A program made the translations under genes and the position numbers. This document shows, piece after piece, positions 10,501 through 25,929 of a stretch of 64,000 nt of DNA. The stretch spans positions 10,478,001 to 10,542,000 of the forward strand of contig CP075497.1 of assembly GCA_021613535.1 (NCBI GenBank). Direction: 5' to 3'. Position 1 is the stretch's first letter. Each line of letters starts with the position of its first letter. The DNA is from Adineta vaga. Lineage: Eukaryota; Animalia; Rotifera. Under the pieces are notes generated by a model, which had not been told where the DNA came from, made no database searches, and saw only the letters and a program-made list of their open reading frames with translations.

Positions 10501-11241
10501 TAAAGTAATCTGATAGAGTAAAATTGCGCTATGAGTCGATATATTTCTCTCTTCATTCTTTTTCTCTTCAATCAACAACGTTTCCTGCCTTGACAAACAC
10601 ACGTTCGTATCGACTTTGAAGATAAATCGCGTGAGAATACTTTTTTTTAATTGTCATGTATGAAATAGTTACAGCTTAGTCGTTGTAAGAAGATTATATG
10701 TGTCATCTCTAGTCAATATCTAAAACAAACGAACTAATGATAGTGACTATCAGAAAAAGAAAAAAATTATTTATTTCTTCTGTTTCACTGGTTTTTATGA
10801 ATATGATAAATACAAAAGAAGAAGAAAAAACACATACAGAGAGAAGAGAGTATAAAAATAATCAGTAAAATAGACCTCGATCATCCAATATAAATCGTCA
10901 CTTGTTTTTGTTACACATACCCATGATTTCAATATGCAAAAATATACGAATCCTTTCGGCATCAATCTCACCAGCGATATTTTGTAATGATTGGCGCACG
11001 TATGACCTTGTTGACAATTGACATTCTTTTTCAGAATTTTCTTCCTTGAGAAATCATCGAGAGAAAAGTAAATGAAAGATCGTGTATATTTATTTACTAT
11101 TAATTGTTGATAAGAAAAACACTAACACACACACGAATATTAAATCTTTTCATGTTCTTTAGTCTTCTTTTTTAAGTGGCAAACGCAAAAAAACAAAGAG
11201 ATAGAAGATTTGTCTGATTGCAAAGTACTTCTTTAACGATC

Positions 11242-12438
11242 ATGAATGTATCGACGACATCGTCGACATCTTCAATATCTGAACAACGTCTTGTCGAATT
11301 TAAACGTATTGTCGAAGGATATTTATTATCAATCGTATGCATATGTGGCTTATTAGGTAATGCCTTAACTTGTGTGATATTATCCAGTCGTGTTATGCGT
11401 ACATCAACAACAAATATCTATATATTTGCATTGTCATGCGCTTCATCATGTGTTTTAATTGGATTTTTGCTAACGCACGGTATTCGTTCAACATTTCATG
11501 CTGAAATATTCTATCAACTTATCTTTACACGAGTTTTTCCTATACATTTAACATGTTTATTAATTCAAATCTATTTAACAGCAACTGTAGCTGTTGATCG
11601 TTTTATTCTCATTTGTTTGCCATTTCGTGGACAAAAATGGCGTAGTCCACGGCACGCTATTTTTGTTGTTCTTTGTGTCACTATATTCTGTATTATATAT
11701 TGCATACCATTTTGGTTTGAATTTACTTTAATGAAGAAAAATAATACAAAAACCATTGTTCTGTCCAAAATCGGTTTACATCCAGTGTTTCGATTGATAA
11801 TGCGTAAATATCTTTATTTTGTTTTTGTTTTTCTTATTCCATTATCAACCATTATTATATGTAAAACAATGATTATTAAAAAATTATATACTGTACGTCA
11901 ACGTAAACGACTATTAGGAACACTATCAAAACAAAATCGTTCATCGAATGCTATTAATTTCTTATTATTATCAATTGTTTTTGTTTTTCTTTTAACGCAA
12001 TTACCCTGCTTTGTTTTTAATGTTCTTTATTCATGGATGGGCGCAACTTTAATGGCTAATTTACGTGCAAGACAATATCTTGCTATCAATAATCTTTTAT
12101 TAGTTATTAATGCATCATCAACATTCATACTTTATGCATTTTTTGATCGAAAATTTCGACAAGTTGGTCAACATTTCTTATTTTGTCATCCATTACCAGC
12201 TAGTTTCGATGGGCAAGGTGGTGCAACACGTATATTAACATCGAATCGAAATCCAAGTTTTTTCTTTTCCAATAGCAAATCATCACGTTCATCAATACAT
12301 TTATTAAAGAATCATCGTTATTCATCAACTGTAAATAATAATCTCCAAGATTTAACTAAAAATCAATTATTTGAAGGTAAATTATTAACTGCCAAAAGTG
12401 TTCCACTTCTTGAAACAGATGAACAACTATCAACATAG
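11242..12438 (+). CDS. Class A GPCR, FMRFamide/neuropeptide receptor-like, intronless
   Basis: Seven hydrophobic segments; GLLGN in TM1, AVDRF (DRY equivalent), IPFWFE, TQLP in TM6, INASSTFILY...KFR in TM7/helix 8. First ATG is at 11242. Confidence 0.85.
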   Translation: MNVSTTSSTSSISEQRLVEFKRIVEGYLLSIVCICGLLGNALTCVILSSRVMRTSTTNIYIFALSCASSCVLIGFLLTHGIRSTFHAEIFYQLIFTRVFPIHLTCLLIQIYLTATVAVDRFILICLPFRGQKWRSPRHAIFVVLCVTIFCIIYCIPFWFEFTLMKKNNTKTIVLSKIGLHPVFRLIMRKYLYFVFVFLIPLSTIIICKTMIIKKLYTVRQRKRLLGTLSKQNRSSNAINFLLLSIVFVFLLTQLPCFVFNVLYSWMGATLMANLRARQYLAINNLLLVINASSTFILYAFFDRKFRQVGQHFLFCHPLPASFDGQGGATRILTSNRNPSFFFSNSKSSRSSIHLLKNHRYSSTVNNNLQDLTKNQLFEGKLLTAKSVPLLETDEQLST

Positions 12439-14175: not shown

Positions 14176-15231
14176 TTAGATTTTCTTAGCAACTTTCTTC
14201 TTCTTTTTTGATGTTTCTTCTTCGACTACTTCTTCATCGTCACTTGAGACATCTCCAATATCGATACCTAGAAAAAATGCTCCTGTGGCACCTTTTTCCT
14301 TTTTTGTTTTCTTATTTATCAATTCGCCATCTTCGAGGACATCATCTGAATGACGTCGTTTTTTTGGTATTGTTCCTTCCGTTTCGTCATCGTCTCGGGT
14401 ACTAACAGCTGTTGATGATTTTTTCTTCTTTTTCAATTTCTCAGCTTGAATTAATTCCGTAGCGATTTGAACAGCTTCATCCATATCGTCAGCAATCTGT
14501 TTCTTTTGTTCATCATAAGCTGTATCGGAGAATTTATGTGGAGGTGGAACGTTACGATAATCTTTTTCTTCATTCGATGACGAAGATGGTTTATTCTTTT
14601 GATCAGTTGCAGATTGTTCTAATTGCTTTTGCATCCATTCCTAAATTAAAGAAGATTCTTGTCAAATTTATTAGAAGTCAAGTAGAATTCTTCGGTTTAA
14701 CGTGGGAAAGAACAAATCGACCTTATCAAGAAGAAAAATAGAACATAATCATATTTTATTATGGAAGTACTGATAAATCACGTATATTGCATTACTGTCA
14801 TAACAATAGTCAATGGAGAAAAGATAAGATTAAGAGAGAATTGACATACTTGCAGTTTTTTTTCATTATTAACATCGCGCATTCGGCGACCATTTAAATC
14901 GCGACAAGCTTCTTTATTTTTTGAGATTAAAATTTGTTTACCAAATGAACGTAATAAAGATCCAAAACCACCCTTTAAAAAAAAACGAAATAAACATCGA
15001 ACAATTAATCAAATATAAAAAACTAACCTTTCCACCAAGTACTTTTGGCCAAATTTTATAAGTTTCATCATCTATCAATTCATAATCACTTGATAAATCA
15101 ATTTTCTTTCCATTTTGTTCAATAATATAAGAATGTTCACCTAATAAATCATTTAATTCTTCGACAAATTCATTCAAAGAATTGAATGAAGATACATGAA
15201 TGTTTTCTTGATGTCCAATTTGAATATACAT
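14176..15231 (-). CDS. SDE2: SDE2 homolog (ubiquitin-like N-terminus, GG|K cleavage site, SDE2 domain), short form
   Basis: Three exons spliced give ...[53 protein letters not shown], the SDE2 signature, followed by a Lys/acidic tail. Confidence 0.9.
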
Positions 15232-15363
15232 CTAGAATAATACATAGAAAAATAACATCATAATAACGACAAGAGAAACATTTCATATTATCATCTGACA
15301 AACAAAAACAAAACGTTCGACTAGAATTAACAAAAGTTTTCAAAGAAAAATACTGAAAAATAT

Positions 15364-18300
15364 TTATAGATAGAACAAATTTTTGTGACGATCACATTTA
15401 GGTGAAGCACCAAGAGTTTCACCGACTAAAGATGAAAGACGTTGAGCAAACTAAAACAGAAAAATATTGATAAATTTTGATCGAGAAAGAATCACTTACT
15501 CGACAGATTGATGGCACAAAAAAGTGATTACGTTGTGGAATATGTACGGTTAAATAAAGTATTAATCGTTGAATTTTTTGTGCTGATAAATCGGTATTAT
15601 CGAAAAGAACAAGGAATTGACGAGCTTGTAATGTTGAAGAACGATCACGATGAGATGATAAATAAAAACAATAACTTGGTCTGAAAAATATAAATATATT
15701 TGACATCGAATGTGAATGAAGATAACTTACGAATCTTTTGCAATTAGACAACCAACATTAGGAACTTTTTTTGGCTAAAAAAAGATGAAAAAATGAGCAA
15801 ATATTCGATAAATAAACGGACTCTCCTATCTTTCTAAGTGTCTCATCGAATAACATACCTGAACATAATTATAGAAATCGTAGATCATTTGTTTCATATA
15901 TGTAAAGATAATCAATCGTGGTTTATAATCACCCATGATATTTTCATCAGTAATCATATTAATAATTGATAGAATTTCATTCTCTTTGATAAGATTCAAA
16001 GCATCAAATGCTGAATAAACATTTCGTCCGATAATAATTGTTGTTGGATAAGTTTTATTTTCCTAGAAGAACATCACAATGCCTTATTAGAAGATAGAAG
16101 ATTTTAAAAAGAAAGAACCTTTCAACATACTTCATAATAAGCATCGATAGCTAATTGAACAAAAAGTCCAATATCATTTCGAAGATCATTTTCATTATTA
16201 TATGATTTTGCATGACTGAAATATTCTGTCATATTATAATTAATTGAACCAACAATCGATAGAACATAATCAAGATGTTCCGGTGATGTATAATTCACAT
16301 TCAATGATGTCCAAGTAGCAATACCTATGACCATAACATTTGGCTATTAAAAAAGATTTCGATAATCAAAATTGAGAATTCATCAAATAAAATCTTACGA
16401 TAGTCATATTTACAGCTCGAATTTGTCCACCAAGTTTAAAATTAATATCTCGAGCAATGTTTAATGCTACACCTGGAAGAATATCATCATCAGCTATTGT
16501 GCTTCTGAGAACAATCTGAGATAGATATGTATGAATAAATGATGAAATCAAAAATAAATATCTCACTTCACTTGCAGTTGGAATTTCGATACAACAAATA
16601 CGTTTTATCATATTATAACGATCGATTCGACGTGATTTAACAATTACTGATACTAGTTGTATCTAAATAAACATGAGATTTCTATGATTCAGATGGACAT
16701 ATTATAGAATTTACTTGTTCATTGAGATTATAACGAAGAGTATTGGCATATGTATCAGTTTCGTCATCATCCATCTGTACATGAATTGGCTCATTGACAA
16801 GCATACCATGTTGTTGTCCTACTTGTCGAAGCATATTTACATAGATCGATGCTCGATCTTCGTCAACTTTCGGATAGACTAATAGCCAACAATTCAGTTC
16901 AACCTATAGGTCAAAAGAGTAATACATATGAATAATCAATAGCGAAAATTTCTAAGTAGAAAAAAGAACTGTTTTTCATACCGGATTAACAAAATGGCCA
17001 TAGGAAAATTCATGATCATGTATATCTCTTCCTTCATGTTCGTCATCAGATGAATCTTTATTGAGAAATTTCTAAATGACAAAAGGCAATTATTTATCGA
17101 TCATACTTTCAATTCGCTTCCACTTACTCGAGATGAATCATCAATTGATGAATGATTTGAAAGTATATTTGAAACTACATTCATGCCCCATAGAGCAAGA
17201 TATTTCACTGTTGCAGCATTTCGTCGAATCATATCGTCGAAAAACGAGATTTCAGCTTGACGTCCAGCCGAATCCAATGGAATAAAACTATTCGTCTTTC
17301 GTGCCTATATAAAACAAATATACATATTTGATATCCAAACCGATTCGTTTCTTACTCGAGCATCTCGATGTGCTCGATCGGATAGACCAGTTAAATAGCA
17401 TAATTCCGGTACTAGATAATTTGCTTCTGTATTAACCTAAACTACTAATAAATTCAAATCGAACAAAAATATTTTTATTTTCTTACGTTTTCACCAGGTC
17501 GTCGAGGACAATAAACTATCAATGGTTGATCAGGATCTTTGATTGTTATATCAAATTTATTTCTAGAGAGAAAAAAAGAAACGAATTATAATCATAACAA
17601 AATGTAATCAGTTTACAAATAATAATCGATTAATGTTTGTGAATTATCATTGAATGTAAATGTTGCAGGTGTTAAATTAAAATCGATATTATCAATTCGT
17701 TGTGTTCGATTATCATATCTTGTTAGTACAAGTTTATTGATTAATTCTTTTCGAATCAATTCTTGATAGTCTCCACCTGATGTTGACATATAAAATCGTT
17801 CTCTAAATTCAAAATCTTTTCCATTTGAAATTCTTCATCGATCATGAAATGTTTCTTACAATTCTTCGTAACAAGTACTGGTTGGTTTTTGAAGAAAATC
17901 AATTGTTAATAATAATCCATCTTCATGACGTTCAATATTTACAATTTTACCATTCCAATAGCGAATTCTAATGAAATAAAAATAAGGATGAATTACGTGA
18001 GAAAATAAAATATTTACTTTGAACGATAACCATTTCGATTTGTTGAATTTATAATCGATTCTCGACCATGATCAATCGCTCTAGAACAAAATCTTGTTTT
18101 TGTTTTACTATTTCAATAACAATCAACTTACAATCGAAATAAGATATTAATTAAATCGATTGAGATTTGTTCAATATTAATCGTATCAATAAATCGAATA
18201 CGTACTTCATTCGGAGTATCCGATGCTGTATTATTAAACACGAAAAACTATTTTTTCAGACAAAAACAATGATCGTTTTTCTTTATCGTTTTCTGAAAAT

Positions 18301-18815
18301 CAATTTACTTCTTTTGATAATTGATGTGGAACATAAAGAAATTCACCATCGTATAATTTATATAAACCACCGACATATTTTGATAAATGATTGATCATTG
18401 TAAAACGTGTAGTTCGACTTGAAATGTTTGGTTGAAAATCAATAACATATTTATACCAAGGTGTAACTGTACAATTGATTAATAGTTGATTTTCTGAACT
18501 AAGATGAAATTATTATTTTTTGTCTTACTAATTCATTGTTTCAATGAAATAACTCAAACTCACAGATCTCGATGAGAATTGAATGATGATGATTGTCTAA
18601 AGAGAAAAGAAAATAAACGTGATGAATTGCAAAAATAAATAAGTCTCAACGAACTTGATTTGACGTAAGATTTGTGCTGCACGTCCGCTAGCTACATTTA
18701 AATTATCGTTTGCATTCACCGAAGGTGATGGTGGCGGACATGGATTGGAATTTTGAAACATATCTCTAGCAGGATTTCCACGTCCATAAGTTCCTGAGCT
18801 TTGAAATTGATTCAT
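15364..18815 (-). CDS. piwi: Divergent PIWI-clade Argonaute (N, L1, PAZ, L2, MID, PIWI), 19 exons, predicted slicer-dead
   Basis: Manual splicing gives a continuous frame. N domain WYKYVIDFQP..LYDGEFLYVP; PAZ VLTRYDNRTQRIDNIDFNLTP..IKDPDQPLI..LVPELCYLTGL; MID RYNMIKRICCIEIPTASE..INFKLGG; PIWI VMVIGIAT..IIIGRNV..IQRLILYL..VPSICRFAQRLSSLVG; C-terminus LFYL*, typical of the PIWI clade. Confidence 0.9.
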
Positions 18816-18953
18816 TATTATTGATAAATAAAACTAAATAATGTAATGAACTTACATTACAAATACAAAACATTTTGGGAGAAATTTCACTGAACCAATC
18901 AATGAAAAGAACGATCTTAGTGACATCTAAAATGAAATTCATATCGAAGGAAT

Positions 18954-18966
18954 GTTGCTAAGTAAC
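18954..18966 (+). promoter_or_regulatory. RFX X-box in the shared PIWI/IQUB promoter
   Basis: GTTGCTAAGTAAC, an imperfect palindrome matching the X-box consensus, about 60 bp upstream of the ATG of the motile-cilium gene IQUB. A CCAAT lies at ~18896. Confidence 0.6.
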
Positions 18967-19025
18967 AGAACTTCAAAATGGTTGATTAGATATTTATACA
19001 TTTTGATTATTTTCATCGTTGAGAG

Positions 19026-21763
19026 ATGGCTGACGAACATGATGTTCCATTTCCACCACTTCCATCAATGGTTATCGATAAAGATGAAGATCGTATTCAT
19101 GATGGAAAAGATTCAAAACAAGAATATGAAACTAAATTAGCAACTGTAAAAATGTTATTAAAATCGATTGATCAAACAGTCACAGTCGCTTTTCCATTAC
19201 ATGCACCAGTTAATGAATTGATAACACATTTTGCTAAAGAACTACGTATGTCACCAAATGTTTTACAAATCATTTTCAAAGGTTCGTTTGATTATTTTAT
19301 TGAAATTTTGTATTCGAAACGATCTTTATTTGTTTAGAAAAAGTTTTGGAAAATCAATTAACTCTTTCACAAATTGATGTCGAACCAAATACCACCGTTA
19401 GCATGGGTTTGTTTTGTTATATCATCTGATAAAATAAGATTCTAAAATTTTATTTTAGAATTACATTCAAAAGATCCAGCAAATTATCCATTACGACCTT
19501 ATAGACCACGTCAAGATATATCAATGCCTGATGTTATCACTGTTCGAATCGATGAAGGTTAAAAATCATTTCTATCCATTATTAAACTTCATATCTCGTT
19601 TTCTTCTTCTTTTCCCATTAGACGCAGATATAAGTCGTGATATTGTTGTTGAAATTGAGCGTAATAATATTCGTAAACCATATTTGGGTGGTACACGCCA
19701 TCGAATGACTGGTAAAGAGTATCATCATGCTAGTGCTCAAACAATTCCACCACAAAGACCAGATAAAGGTTTACAACGTAATTGTCGAGATACTCAAACA
19801 ATTGAATCTCGACATCGAGTTATACAAACAACTAATGAACAATCAACACAAATGAGTAAACCAGGATATTATGTATCAAATGAAGATGATCGTTTAATAA
19901 CACCACAACCATATCAAACAGCTGCGGAAAAATTCGAAATTCTCACAAAAAAAGTAAAGTTAAAAAACGATTCGAGATAAAAACAAAAAACACAGAGGAG
20001 ATTTTCTTCTAGGCGATTATTATACAAAAATATTTTCGTCGTTGGTTAGCTAAACGTGATGTGAATACGTTGAGAGACGCATTTCAAAAACGAGTTCAAT
20101 ATGAATTAGAACAAAAACAGAAGCAAGCGGAAGAACGACAAAAACGATATCAATATGATCTTGAACGACGTTTACATCCACGAACAAAAGATGATTTTGA
20201 TGTTCTCTATGCTGCACTTGAAAGTAAACGATTGATTTAAAAGGAATGTTTCATTTCATTCTTCTTCTTTTAGAATGGCGTGAAGAAGAAATTGCAAAAA
20301 TCAATGCAACAAAACAAGGAGCTGGTAAGGAAAAATTTTGAAGAAATAGAATGAATGATTTGATATTTCTCTTTGAAATAGCTCGAAAAGCAGCATTGGC
20401 GTTATTAGTTGATGAAGAAACAGAATTATTAGCAACGATTGATCGATATAAAACTGAAGCGCATAAATACAATAAAGAAGCGAATATTCAACGATTTCTT
20501 GAACGTGTTGCTCAACCAAAAAAATGGAAATATAAAGATGGAACCACAACAGAATTAGAGTAAATCATCTAAGCATCTAACTATTTCATAGAATTAGTTT
20601 ATTCTTTTGAATTTTAGTACACCTTATTCCATTCGTGCACGTGAATTAATGCAAATTTATAATACAATTACTATGAAATTTTTAACACTTGACGAACGAT
20701 TAGATATTTTATTAACATTGAAACATACTGTGAAAGTAGGAAGAAAAAAAACGTTTTTCTCTTTTTTGTTGAGAAATACAAAATGAATTTCTTTGTTAGG
20801 AACATGATAGTCGTCTTACGCAAGAAATAATTCAATTAATTGATCGTGAAGCTGATCTACTCATGCGTGGAACAAAAGAAGAAAATTTAGCTGGTCTTCG
20901 TGAACGTATTTCCACCTTATTTCTTCAATATATCAAAACACCAACATTCAATCCAGGTGTTATTCGACATCTCAAAGTAAAAATAAACATTACATATTCA
21001 TTTCGTTCATAATCTATTCAAAGGTTCCACAAGATCCAGTTACAGCTGCACAATATAAAACACTTTATTGTCGTAGTTGTCAAAAGTATTATCCATCAAC
21101 AGAATTTTCTGTTAGTAGTACCAATGCTAAGATTGGTAAATGTCGACAGTGTCTTCGATTAGAAAATATTGCAAACAAACGAGCTGATCATACGAAATTT
21201 AAGTATGACATACTCAATTATTCTTTTAGAAATGTATTCCATGAGAAATCTTATTTAGATATTTACTTAAAAAGATTGAAAAAGATGAATGTGGTTATAA
21301 TGATGGAGCTCATTGTATATTCTTATTAACGATCAATGATATTGAATATATGTTTAAAAATATTTGGGATAGTCATTCAATTTTAAGTGAAGAATCGGAT
21401 ATTTATAATTTAACATTCATTCGATGGAATCGTCATGAAGAATTTACACCTTGGAATTGTATACTATTAACATTCGAAGAAGCCAATGCTCATTTAAAAC
21501 TTGATGATGTTGAAACGGTATGTTCATATTCAATTTTTACTAAAACAAAATATATATATATTCCTTTTCTATAGAGTTACAGTGAACCATTTTGTAAAAA
21601 AATTCGTTATAAACAGGCGATATCACGTAATCATTTTACAAAACTTGGTGAACATATTCAAAATCAACAACAAACGAATGGATCTAAAGATATGACCATT
21701 ACAGCAGTTAAAGTTGGACGACAACGTGGAACACCAACAGCAATGGCCAATGCATCAGCATAG
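19026..21763 (+). CDS. IQUB: IQ motif and ubiquitin-like domain-containing protein (ciliary radial spoke)
   Basis: Multi-exon gene. UBL-like N-terminus, [20 protein letters not shown] motif [68 protein letters not shown]. Confidence 0.92.
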
Positions 21764-24903: not shown

Positions 24904-25929
24904 ATGTCGAATTCAACAGAACTTTTATTTTATCAATCTCTAAGTCGTTATGTAGTGATTTATGCTGGATTGTTTATATTAATAACTGGTGTTGTCGGTG
25001 GTGGTCTAAATATTCTTGTTTTTACAACATTAAAAACATTTCGACATACTCCATGTGTTTTTTATTTAACAACGACATCAATTGTTAATGTTGCTCAATT
25101 ATTAATTTCACTGTTAATTCGTATACTTGCATTAGGTTTTTCTATTGATCTAACACAAGTATCATGGTTTTGTAAACTTCGATCATTTTTCGTCCAATCT
25201 TCGGCATTGGTTTCCTTGGCTTGTATGACATTAGCAACAGCTGATCAATTCGTATCTATGACTCATCGACGATTAAGTAGTTTGCAATTAGCTTATCGAC
25301 ATGTTTTGATTAGTTGTATATTGATTTTGATTCATGGAATTACTGTTCTAATTTATTTTGATTCACCATCTAGCATATGCGGGATCAATAATGCAGGTTT
25401 TGCGAAATATTTTTCTTATTTCTATTTCCCTGTAATACTGGGATTTTTACCAATTGGTATGATGATAATATTTTCGCTGCTCGCATTTTTTAAAACTCGC
25501 TCTGCTGCTAGTCGAAATGTACACATCGAACATTTAGGACGTAATCGGCAATTAACAGCAATGGTATTAGTTCAAGTAGTATTTATTGTCATATTTACTG
25601 TACCATATCTGATCAGTAATATTTATGTATCAGCAGCAGCAACAGTATCGACAGATCCAGTATTTTTAGTACGTAATAATTTCCTTCAATTAATGACCAT
25701 TCTTCTTTATTATGAAAGTTATTCAGTAAGTCAATTCGTAACAAAAAAAACGTGAAAATTAATGTCTTGATGTTTGTTTTAGACTCCTTGCTACGTTTTT
25801 TGTTGTGTTTCAAAACGATTTCGTAAACAAGTTGTTCATGTCTTGATCGAAGTACATCTCAAACGATTTCAACAAGCGGCAAATAATTTCAATAATAATC
25901 AAGTTGCACCAGAAATAGAAATCAGTTGA
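24904..25929 (+). CDS. Class A (rhodopsin-like) orphan GPCR of a lineage-expanded family
   Basis: Seven TM segments; GVVGGGLN, FCKLR, ATADQF (DRY variant), RQLTAMVLVQ. One intron (~25727-25781), then TPCYVFCCVSKRFRKQ...NNQVAPEIEIS*. Confidence 0.85.

Follow-up and report, generated by a model that had tools for sequence, protein, structure and literature searches.

We report here that a gene of the bdelloid rotifer Adineta vaga encodes a PIWI-clade Argonaute paralog that is real, transcribed and maintained by selection, and whose catalytic site is altered in such a way that slicing has most likely been lost. The gene lies on the minus strand at positions 15364..18815 of the window, i.e. the whole stretch of 64,000 nucleotides that was analysed (contig CP075497.1, positions 10,478,001 to 10,542,000), and its hand-curated model comprises 19 exons with a coding sequence (CDS) of 2412 nucleotides, or 803 amino acids, without any internal stop. 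The residues at the positions of the Asp-Glu-Asp-His (DEDH) tetrad of slicing PIWI proteins read A570/D614/N646/Q778; both metal-binding Asp residues and the His are lost, and the glutamate finger alone is still acidic, as an Asp. Two residues of the pocket that receives the guide RNA's 5' end are also substituted by acidic ones. We consider that the protein probably carries a guide and, in the manner of Drosophila Piwi, acts as an effector by binding alone.

Gene structure and transcription

Translation starts at an ATG at 18815-18813, upstream of which an in-frame stop is found, and terminates at a TAA at 15366-15364. The 18 introns are short (49-84 nucleotides) and all are bounded by GT and AG. 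Automatic models, built for the fewest introns or the longest coding sequence, were rejected, as several of these short introns are open in frame and were thus read through. Intron 13 (16516-16566, 51 nucleotides) is open in this way: exon 13, the intron and exon 14 form one open reading frame (ORF) of 81 amino acids (16366-16611, minus strand), and it is for this reason that length-maximising gene models fail here.

Among 17 public runs listed, 12 contain part of the stretch, and four runs from four studies were compared over 15100-19100; the RNA status of these runs is a guessed label ("RNA?") and the depth of their contigs cannot rank expression. In all four, spliced contigs skip exactly the modelled introns, and the 15 listed splice joints coincide without exception with modelled intron ends (CT..AC on the plus strand). 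Furthermore, a single contig of 2470 nucleotides spans 15333-18842, and hence the whole CDS, its offsets accounting for the three unlisted joints, including those of the 33-nucleotide exon 2. Since exons 15 and 18 are single-copy in the genome, these intron-less contigs correspond to mRNA and not to a processed copy. The transcripts show 11 differences from the window, 7 of which are synonymous and 4 non-synonymous in 3 codons (M19I, P582S and L663S, the latter arising by two changes), a synonymous share above chance (P = 0.003). The original prediction, made from the letters of the window, had proposed 19 exons with GT-AG introns and an intact frame, and had named a lack of expression as evidence that would speak against it; the 803-residue ORF and the matching spliced contigs bear out the model, and spliced transcripts were found in four studies. 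The features of the gene, with the evidence for each, are the following.

15364..18815, minus strand: whole coding span, 19 exons, 803 amino acids; transcript contigs extend from 15333 (3' end) to 18851 (5' end).
18655..18815, minus strand: exon 1, with the start codon, the N-terminal tail and the motifs GRG (18777-18785) and GRA (18678-18686); model and RNA, motifs kept in the ortholog L037.
18564..18596, minus strand: exon 2, 33 nucleotides; model and contig record offsets.
18309..18498, minus strand: exon 3, N domain (Pfam Piwi_N, E 1.2e-4); model, Pfam and RNA.
18132..18247, minus strand: exon 4; model and RNA.
18018..18080, minus strand: exon 5; model and RNA.
17860..17967, minus strand: exon 6; model and RNA.
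17617..17802, minus strand: exon 7, PAZ (Pfam, E 6.9e-9); Pfam, PDB and RNA.
17487..17562, minus strand: exon 8, PAZ continued; model and RNA.
17356..17436, minus strand: exon 9, end of PAZ and L2; model and RNA.
17128..17304, minus strand: exon 10, L2 linker; model and RNA.
16982..17071, minus strand: exon 11, an acidic linker of low complexity and the part with the lowest conservation; model, RNA and comparison with L037.
16715..16903, minus strand: exon 12, MID; model, RNA and paralog comparison.
16567..16662, minus strand: exon 13, MID 5'-phosphate pocket with Y506, K510 and E522; PDB, paralogs and literature.
16399..16515, minus strand: exon 14, KLGG segment with D545 and K549; paralogs and literature.
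16131..16343, minus strand: exon 15, RNase H core with A570 and D614; paralog and hhalign alignments.
15859..16062, minus strand: exon 16, N646 at the position of the second catalytic Asp (GRNV vs YRDG); paralog and hhalign alignments.
15731..15774, minus strand: exon 17; model and RNA.
15500..15680, minus strand: exon 18, C-terminal half of PIWI (Pfam Piwi, E 3.7e-5); Pfam, PDB and RNA.
15364..15450, minus strand: exon 19, Q778 at the position of the catalytic His and the LFYL end (15367-15378), followed by the stop; PDB and paralogs.

Just downstream lies a small gene (window 14176-15231, minus strand), whose counterpart in another species (L037:10425-11424) has a Pfam match to the SDE2 family, and rhodopsin-type G protein-coupled receptor (GPCR) genes flank the locus at 11218-12438 and 24904-25755, both on the plus strand.

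Substitutions at the catalytic site

Pfam and PDB searches were made exon by exon, and exons 15 and 16 gave no match in the single-exon searches of either database, nor did exon 14 give anything relevant against PDB. Because of this, A570 and D614 were placed through paralog and profile alignments. The nearest paralogs by tblastn in the genome of A. vaga are L025 (C2:13.04 Mb) and L012 (C6:7.33 Mb), with about 31% identity over the MID-KLGG region. Unlike the gene under study, L025 possesses all four DEDH contexts (GLDSYH, AQELMDG, YRDGVSDGQ and QYAH); L012 likewise differs from it in having YAH, the sole tetrad context seen in the pieces of this locus that were read. In the alignment with L025, A570 pairs with the first Asp (MVIGIATWT here vs MVIGLDSYH) and N646 with the Asp of YRDG, a pairing also given by hhalign. 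Indeed, comparing a three-species alignment of exons 15 and 16 with nine own-genome paralog ORFs, hhalign returned the same pairing (E 6e-5, probability 65%). The spacing from the first to the second Asp position is 76 residues, for 76-94 in the paralogs, 7 of the 9 being at 76-80. The segment from VGS to GRN aligns without a gap with both L025 and hAgo2, and, as E637 of hAgo2 precedes D669 by 32 residues, D614 (16185-16187) would occupy the glutamate-finger position, the catalytic Glu having been left unplaced by the original prediction. At the C-terminal end, a search with 88 residues of an ortholog pairs Q778 with H874 of Siwi and K818 of Drosophila Piwi (numbering from PMC7015924).

The codons of A570 (GCT, 16317-16319), N646 (AAT, 16021-16023) and Q778 (CAA, 15442-15444) are all in frame, and the four codons reported beforehand as Ala, Asn, Gln and, in the pocket, Glu (4/4) read in frame as had been claimed. 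In the three species available, positions 570, 646 and 778 have no acidic neighbour where covered. Alternative acidic residues in the active site, which had been named as an outcome unfavourable to a non-catalytic protein, were examined at the sequence level: of the tetrad positions, the glutamate finger alone is still acidic, as Asp. Mutation of the first Asp to Ala is the standard slicer-dead mutation (10.1101/2023.07.04.547679), and the H874K substitution of Siwi by itself nearly abolishes slicing (PMC7015924). Because the tetrad reads A/D/N/Q and given these two precedents, we strongly infer that slicing has been lost.

An altered pocket for the guide 5' end

In Drosophila Piwi, the guide's 5' phosphate is held by Y551, K555, Q567 and K593, while Q589 and the C-terminal carboxylate are the ligands of the pocket metal (PMC7015924). 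Q589 (Q645 in Siwi), located four residues before the Lys of KLGG, is specific to PIWI proteins, a Lys being found in AGOs (PMC7015924). The counterparts of the phosphate-binding residues are Y506 (16615-16617), K510 (16603-16605), E522 and K549 (16435-16437), with a spacing equal, up to one residue, to that of Drosophila Piwi; the YKQK motif thus becomes YKEK, the conserved Gln being replaced by Glu522 (GAA, 16567-16569). This agrees with the original prediction, in which Tyr and both Lys residues were kept and a Glu stood at the Gln position. What it had missed is that the position of the PIWI metal-ligand Gln is occupied by Asp545 (16447-16449). At each of the two pocket positions, the PIWI paralogs L025 and L012 have a Gln; in the AGO paralogs, a Lys occupies the metal-ligand position; since both own-genome PIWI paralogs carry Gln at both, E522 and D545 are derived.

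The YKQK motif is nearly invariant, the HKQK of the nematode WAGOs being its only well-known natural variant, and HKQK has been hypothesised to fit the 5'-triphosphate 22G RNAs (PMC12908457). A negative charge at Y529 of hAgo2 impairs the association with small RNAs (reviewed in PMC12908457). In chemical terms, an Asp serving as metal ligand agrees with the metal-dependent 5' recognition of PIWI proteins. The Glu that replaces the Gln is less easily interpreted: it may be part of the metal site, alter the preferred 5' chemistry or block RNA binding, the protein then being a guide-free scaffold.

Domain architecture and Argonaute paralogs of the genome

The order N - PAZ - MID - PIWI is present, with Pfam matches to Piwi_N on exon 3 (1.2e-4), PAZ on exon 7 (6.9e-9) and Piwi on exon 18 (3.7e-5) as well as a weak one to Piwi on exon 14, and the PDB matches are collinear along Siwi and EfPiwi. 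The best 17 PDB matches of the PAZ exon 7 are all PIWI-clade PAZ domains, with Hiwi at the top (E 3.6e-9, 39 bits); the MID exon 13 matches PIWI-clade chains only (EfPiwi best, E 4e-4), and exon 18 matches only Siwi, Drosophila Piwi, EfPiwi and their relatives. No AGO-clade protein occurs among the Argonaute PDB matches of the PAZ, MID and C-terminal exons. As judged by these exon-level matches, the gene is closer to PIWI-clade than to AGO-clade Argonautes. The protein ends with LFYL and the stop, as do L025 and L012, the terminal Leu carboxylate being at the conserved distance, a feature of PIWI proteins; in the PDB search, the last 88 amino acids of the ortholog, in which exons 18 and 19 are fused, align through the final residue of Drosophila Piwi. 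The N-terminal tail contains GRG (residues 11-13) and GRA (residues 44-46), both of which are kept in the ortholog L037. In PIWI proteins, such N-terminal Arg-Gly and Arg-Ala motifs serve as symmetric dimethylarginine (sDMA) sites for Tudor partners, and the two motifs found here are candidates for this role.

The genome searched totals 100.8 Mb in 6 contigs. A six-frame scan with PF02171 gave 68 exon-level matches at about 25 loci and did not detect the gene under study, which shows how far it has diverged. Like it, L025 and L012 have the KLGG context and the LFYL end, and in L025 the codon following which an intron is inserted, that of PSQ (ASE here), is also shared. For the AGO-type paralogs L002 and L004, hAgo2 is the first match. 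Searches with exons 15 and 18 revealed no second copy or ohnolog of the gene in the six-contig assembly. Other Argonaute loci are paired across contigs, e.g. C1:14820596 with C4:8486320 and C2:6670296 with C5:11434757, and tandem or nearby Argonaute pairs with canonical GxDxxH and YRDG are found at C6:6889721-6894547 (L001/L003), C3:9059574-9064087 (L004/L007) and C5:15497370-15552984.

Conservation and selection in related species

The representative search made with exon 15 yielded two short metagenome ORFs but no full-length annotated relative, own-genome records possibly not being included in it; P0002, also returned, proved to be an unrelated low-complexity protein and was discarded. A metagenome scan with an exon-16 alignment gave the ortholog L036, 1429 bp long and covering exons 10-17, and a word search with exon 18 led to P0004, carried by metagenome contigs of up to 16.4 kb. 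The contigs L037-L041 and L034 belong to one species ("species B"), with a mutual identity of 99.3-100% and 36% G+C. A further contig was set aside (L035:1-440), as only 27 amino acids, at the end of exon 15, matched and the upstream part resembles a bacterial signal peptide ORF; it is probably a chimera. The last 50 bases of L036 (1379-1429) are G+C-rich, unlike the A+T-rich rotifer sequence before them, and may also be a chimeric contig end.

The ortholog in L037 is intact, with 19 exons, 803 amino acids and introns all of the GT-AG type; it was modelled with a custom spliced aligner, two weakly conserved exons being placed by hand from the conservation of exon lengths and the better quality of their splice sites. 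Species B also retains the downstream SDE2-like gene and a GPCR neighbour, arranged in the same order as in the window. Intron gain or loss is visible at two places: an extra intron of 52 nucleotides lies inside the counterpart of window exon 1 (L037:7007-7058), and window intron 18 is absent, exons 18 and 19 being fused (L037:10018-10285).

Over 794 aligned codons, L037 and the window gene share 72.5% amino acid identity, with a non-synonymous rate (dN) of 0.168, a synonymous rate (dS) of 0.945 and a dN/dS of 0.18. By part, the ratio is 0.41 in the N-terminal tail, 0.19 in N/L1, 0.15 in PAZ, 0.31 in L2, 0.096 in MID, 0.18 in the PIWI core and 0.10 in the C-terminal part of PIWI. For L036, 287 codons give 84% identity and a dN/dS of 0.17 (bootstrap 95% interval 0.11-0.24), none of 500 bootstraps reaching 1. 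A dN/dS near 1, also named in advance as adverse, was hence not obtained with either ortholog. L037 keeps GRG, GRA, Y506, K510, E522, D545, K549, A570, D614, N646, Q778 and LFYL, and L036 keeps all seven of the listed residues within its coverage (Y506 to N646). Between the species-B contigs, most variants are synonymous and no indel affects the coding sequence. The proposal of a maintained non-catalytic PIWI is thus supported by a gene that is expressed, spliced and under a dN/dS of 0.18, with altered residues identical in the other species where covered.

Comparison with non-slicing Argonautes

PIWI proteins that do not slice have been described before, as is the case of Drosophila Piwi with its DVDK tetrad (PMC7015924), and for that reason the "undescribed small-RNA branch" suggested as a possibility in the original prediction goes beyond the evidence. 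Drosophila Piwi (PDB 6KR6) resembles the rotifer protein by its PIWI-clade membership, its N-PAZ-MID-PIWI organisation, its non-canonical tetrad and the common layout of a metal-dependent 5' pocket with a C-terminal Leu carboxylate. It is proposed to be an RNA-guided binding platform and not a nuclease, a role that is predicted here by likeness; as in this non-slicing type, the guide-binding modules of the rotifer protein are retained and the tetrad is lost. The two proteins differ in that Drosophila Piwi keeps the catalytic Asp residues (D614 and D685 in its own numbering) and loses only the Glu and the His, whereas in the rotifer protein the two Asp and the His are missing; restoring four residues revives slicing in Drosophila Piwi. 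They also differ in the pocket, with Q567 and Q589 on the one hand and E522 and D545 on the other hand.

The nematode WAGOs, which have an HKQK pocket, are mostly non-slicing and bind 5'-triphosphate products of RNA-dependent RNA polymerases (RdRP) (PMC12908457), are like the rotifer gene lineage-expanded Argonautes of an RdRP-rich animal in which slicing is lost and YKQK altered. Unlike it, they fall outside the PIWI clade, and their pocket changes from Tyr to His, as compared with Gln to Glu plus Gln to Asp in the rotifer protein. The gene belongs to the known bdelloid expansion of Ago/Piwi (mean 21.5 copies), which includes the BDAGO I/II clades (Nowell et al. 2021, PMC7943196); that study counted proteins by Pfam PAZ plus PIWI and did not discuss catalytic residues. 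In the literature searched, we found no description of a slicer-dead PIWI-clade bdelloid paralog or of its pocket, and no described case combining loss of the tetrad with acidic changes of YKQK and of the metal-ligand Gln. To our knowledge, animal PIWI-clade proteins without both catalytic Asp and His yet under strong purifying selection are uncommon.

Function of the protein

The strongest constraint bears on the parts that hold both ends of the guide, which argues for retained guide loading. The guide-end-holding modules being kept (PAZ, Y506/K510/K549 of MID and the PIWI-type C-terminal end), a small RNA would still be loaded, and the loaded protein would act as an RNA-guided binding platform recruiting effectors, like Drosophila Piwi, leaving the target uncut. 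Recognition of the 5' end would remain metal-mediated and be modified via E522 and D545. Several points weigh against this reading. The catalytic-core exons 15 and 16 are too diverged for single-exon detection by Pfam or PDB, so that A570 and D614 were positioned by aligning paralogs and profiles, hhalign giving a probability of only 65%. The two extra negative charges could block 5'-phosphate binding in the pocket altogether. Inspection of the N-terminal tail by eye showed no evident classical nuclear localisation signal. Finally, L036 contains an in-frame TAG (137-139) in its exon-11 homolog if an upstream acceptor is used, which may point to the use of another acceptor, to faulty assembly or to an allele that has been disabled; with the AG at 138-139 as acceptor, the exon has 16 codons and the frame is open.

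We regard as unlikely that the protein is a guide-free scaffold or decoy, in which E522 and D545 would occupy the 5'-phosphate pocket or repel the phosphate so that no small RNA is loaded, the protein then serving as a platform for partners (e.g. Tudor proteins via the N-terminal RG motifs) or as a competitor of active PIWIs. In its favour are the near invariance of YKQK, the disruption of which abolishes loading, the impairment of RNA binding by a negative charge in the hAgo2 pocket (PMC12908457), the conservation of GRG and GRA and the strong divergence of the catalytic core. However, constraint is greatest in MID (0.096), and PAZ too is well preserved (0.15, with 39 bits to the PAZ of Hiwi), which is hard to account for if neither end of an RNA is bound; Y506, K510 and K549 remain, as does the precise length of the C-terminal end, and a metal ion is already present in PIWI pockets (PMC7015924), for which an Asp would be a good ligand at this position. 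Rather improbable, in our opinion, is a non-slicing PIWI devoted to guides with non-standard 5' ends, such as di- or triphosphorylated RdRP products, received in a carboxylate-rich, metal-mediated pocket formed by E522, D545 and the C-terminal carboxylate. In its favour, the two substitutions in the pocket are derived and are shared by two other species, the HKQK of WAGOs offers a precedent hypothesised for 5'-triphosphate 22G RNAs (PMC12908457), and the RdRP expansion of bdelloids is large, with about 39 copies (PMC7943196). Nevertheless, this would be reasoning by analogy alone, with a WAGO change located at a different residue and whose fit to such guides is itself a hypothesis, and the Asp at the metal-ligand position may just preserve ordinary metal-dependent binding of a 5' monophosphate.

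It seems very improbable that the protein has kept nuclease activity by means of other residues close to the RNase H site, which would replace the lost Asp/Asp/His. D614 is acidic and D618 and D652 are nearby in sequence, but 3 of the 4 tetrad positions are changed, no acidic residue flanks 570, 646 or 778 in three species, and the changes that render other Argonautes slicer-dead (first Asp to Ala, 10.1101/2023.07.04.547679) or nearly so (H874K of Siwi, PMC7015924) bear on the same positions. The very high divergence from the paralogs, the lack of an ohnolog, the relaxed linkers (dN/dS 0.31-0.41) and the TAG of one ortholog contig (L036) under one splice reading could suggest a decaying or neutrally drifting duplicate, i.e. 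a still-open pseudogene with eroding catalytic residues. Against this stand an 803-residue ORF intact in two species at a dS of about 0.95, a conserved exon structure and synteny, expression in four studies with mostly synonymous polymorphism, and 0/500 bootstraps (L036) at 1. Since the residues are kept in the orthologs and the whole-gene dN/dS is 0.18, decay is in practice excluded.

Bdelloid rotifers are a model for the control of transposons without sex. Their expansions of Ago/Piwi and RdRP have already been reported (PMC7943196, PMC8885841), and a link between piRNA/Piwi and the bdelloid silencing loop of N4-methylcytosine (4mC) and histone H3 lysine 9 (H3K9) has been hypothesised (PMC8885841). 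If true, the reading in which unusual 5' ends are bound would place in the PIWI clade an equivalent of the WAGO branch of nematodes, together with a class of small RNAs undescribed in rotifers. The gene also constitutes a natural experiment on the tolerance of the YKQK pocket. Furthermore, within the expanded Ago/Piwi and RdRP families of bdelloids, it stands as a single-copy candidate for a binding-only effector.

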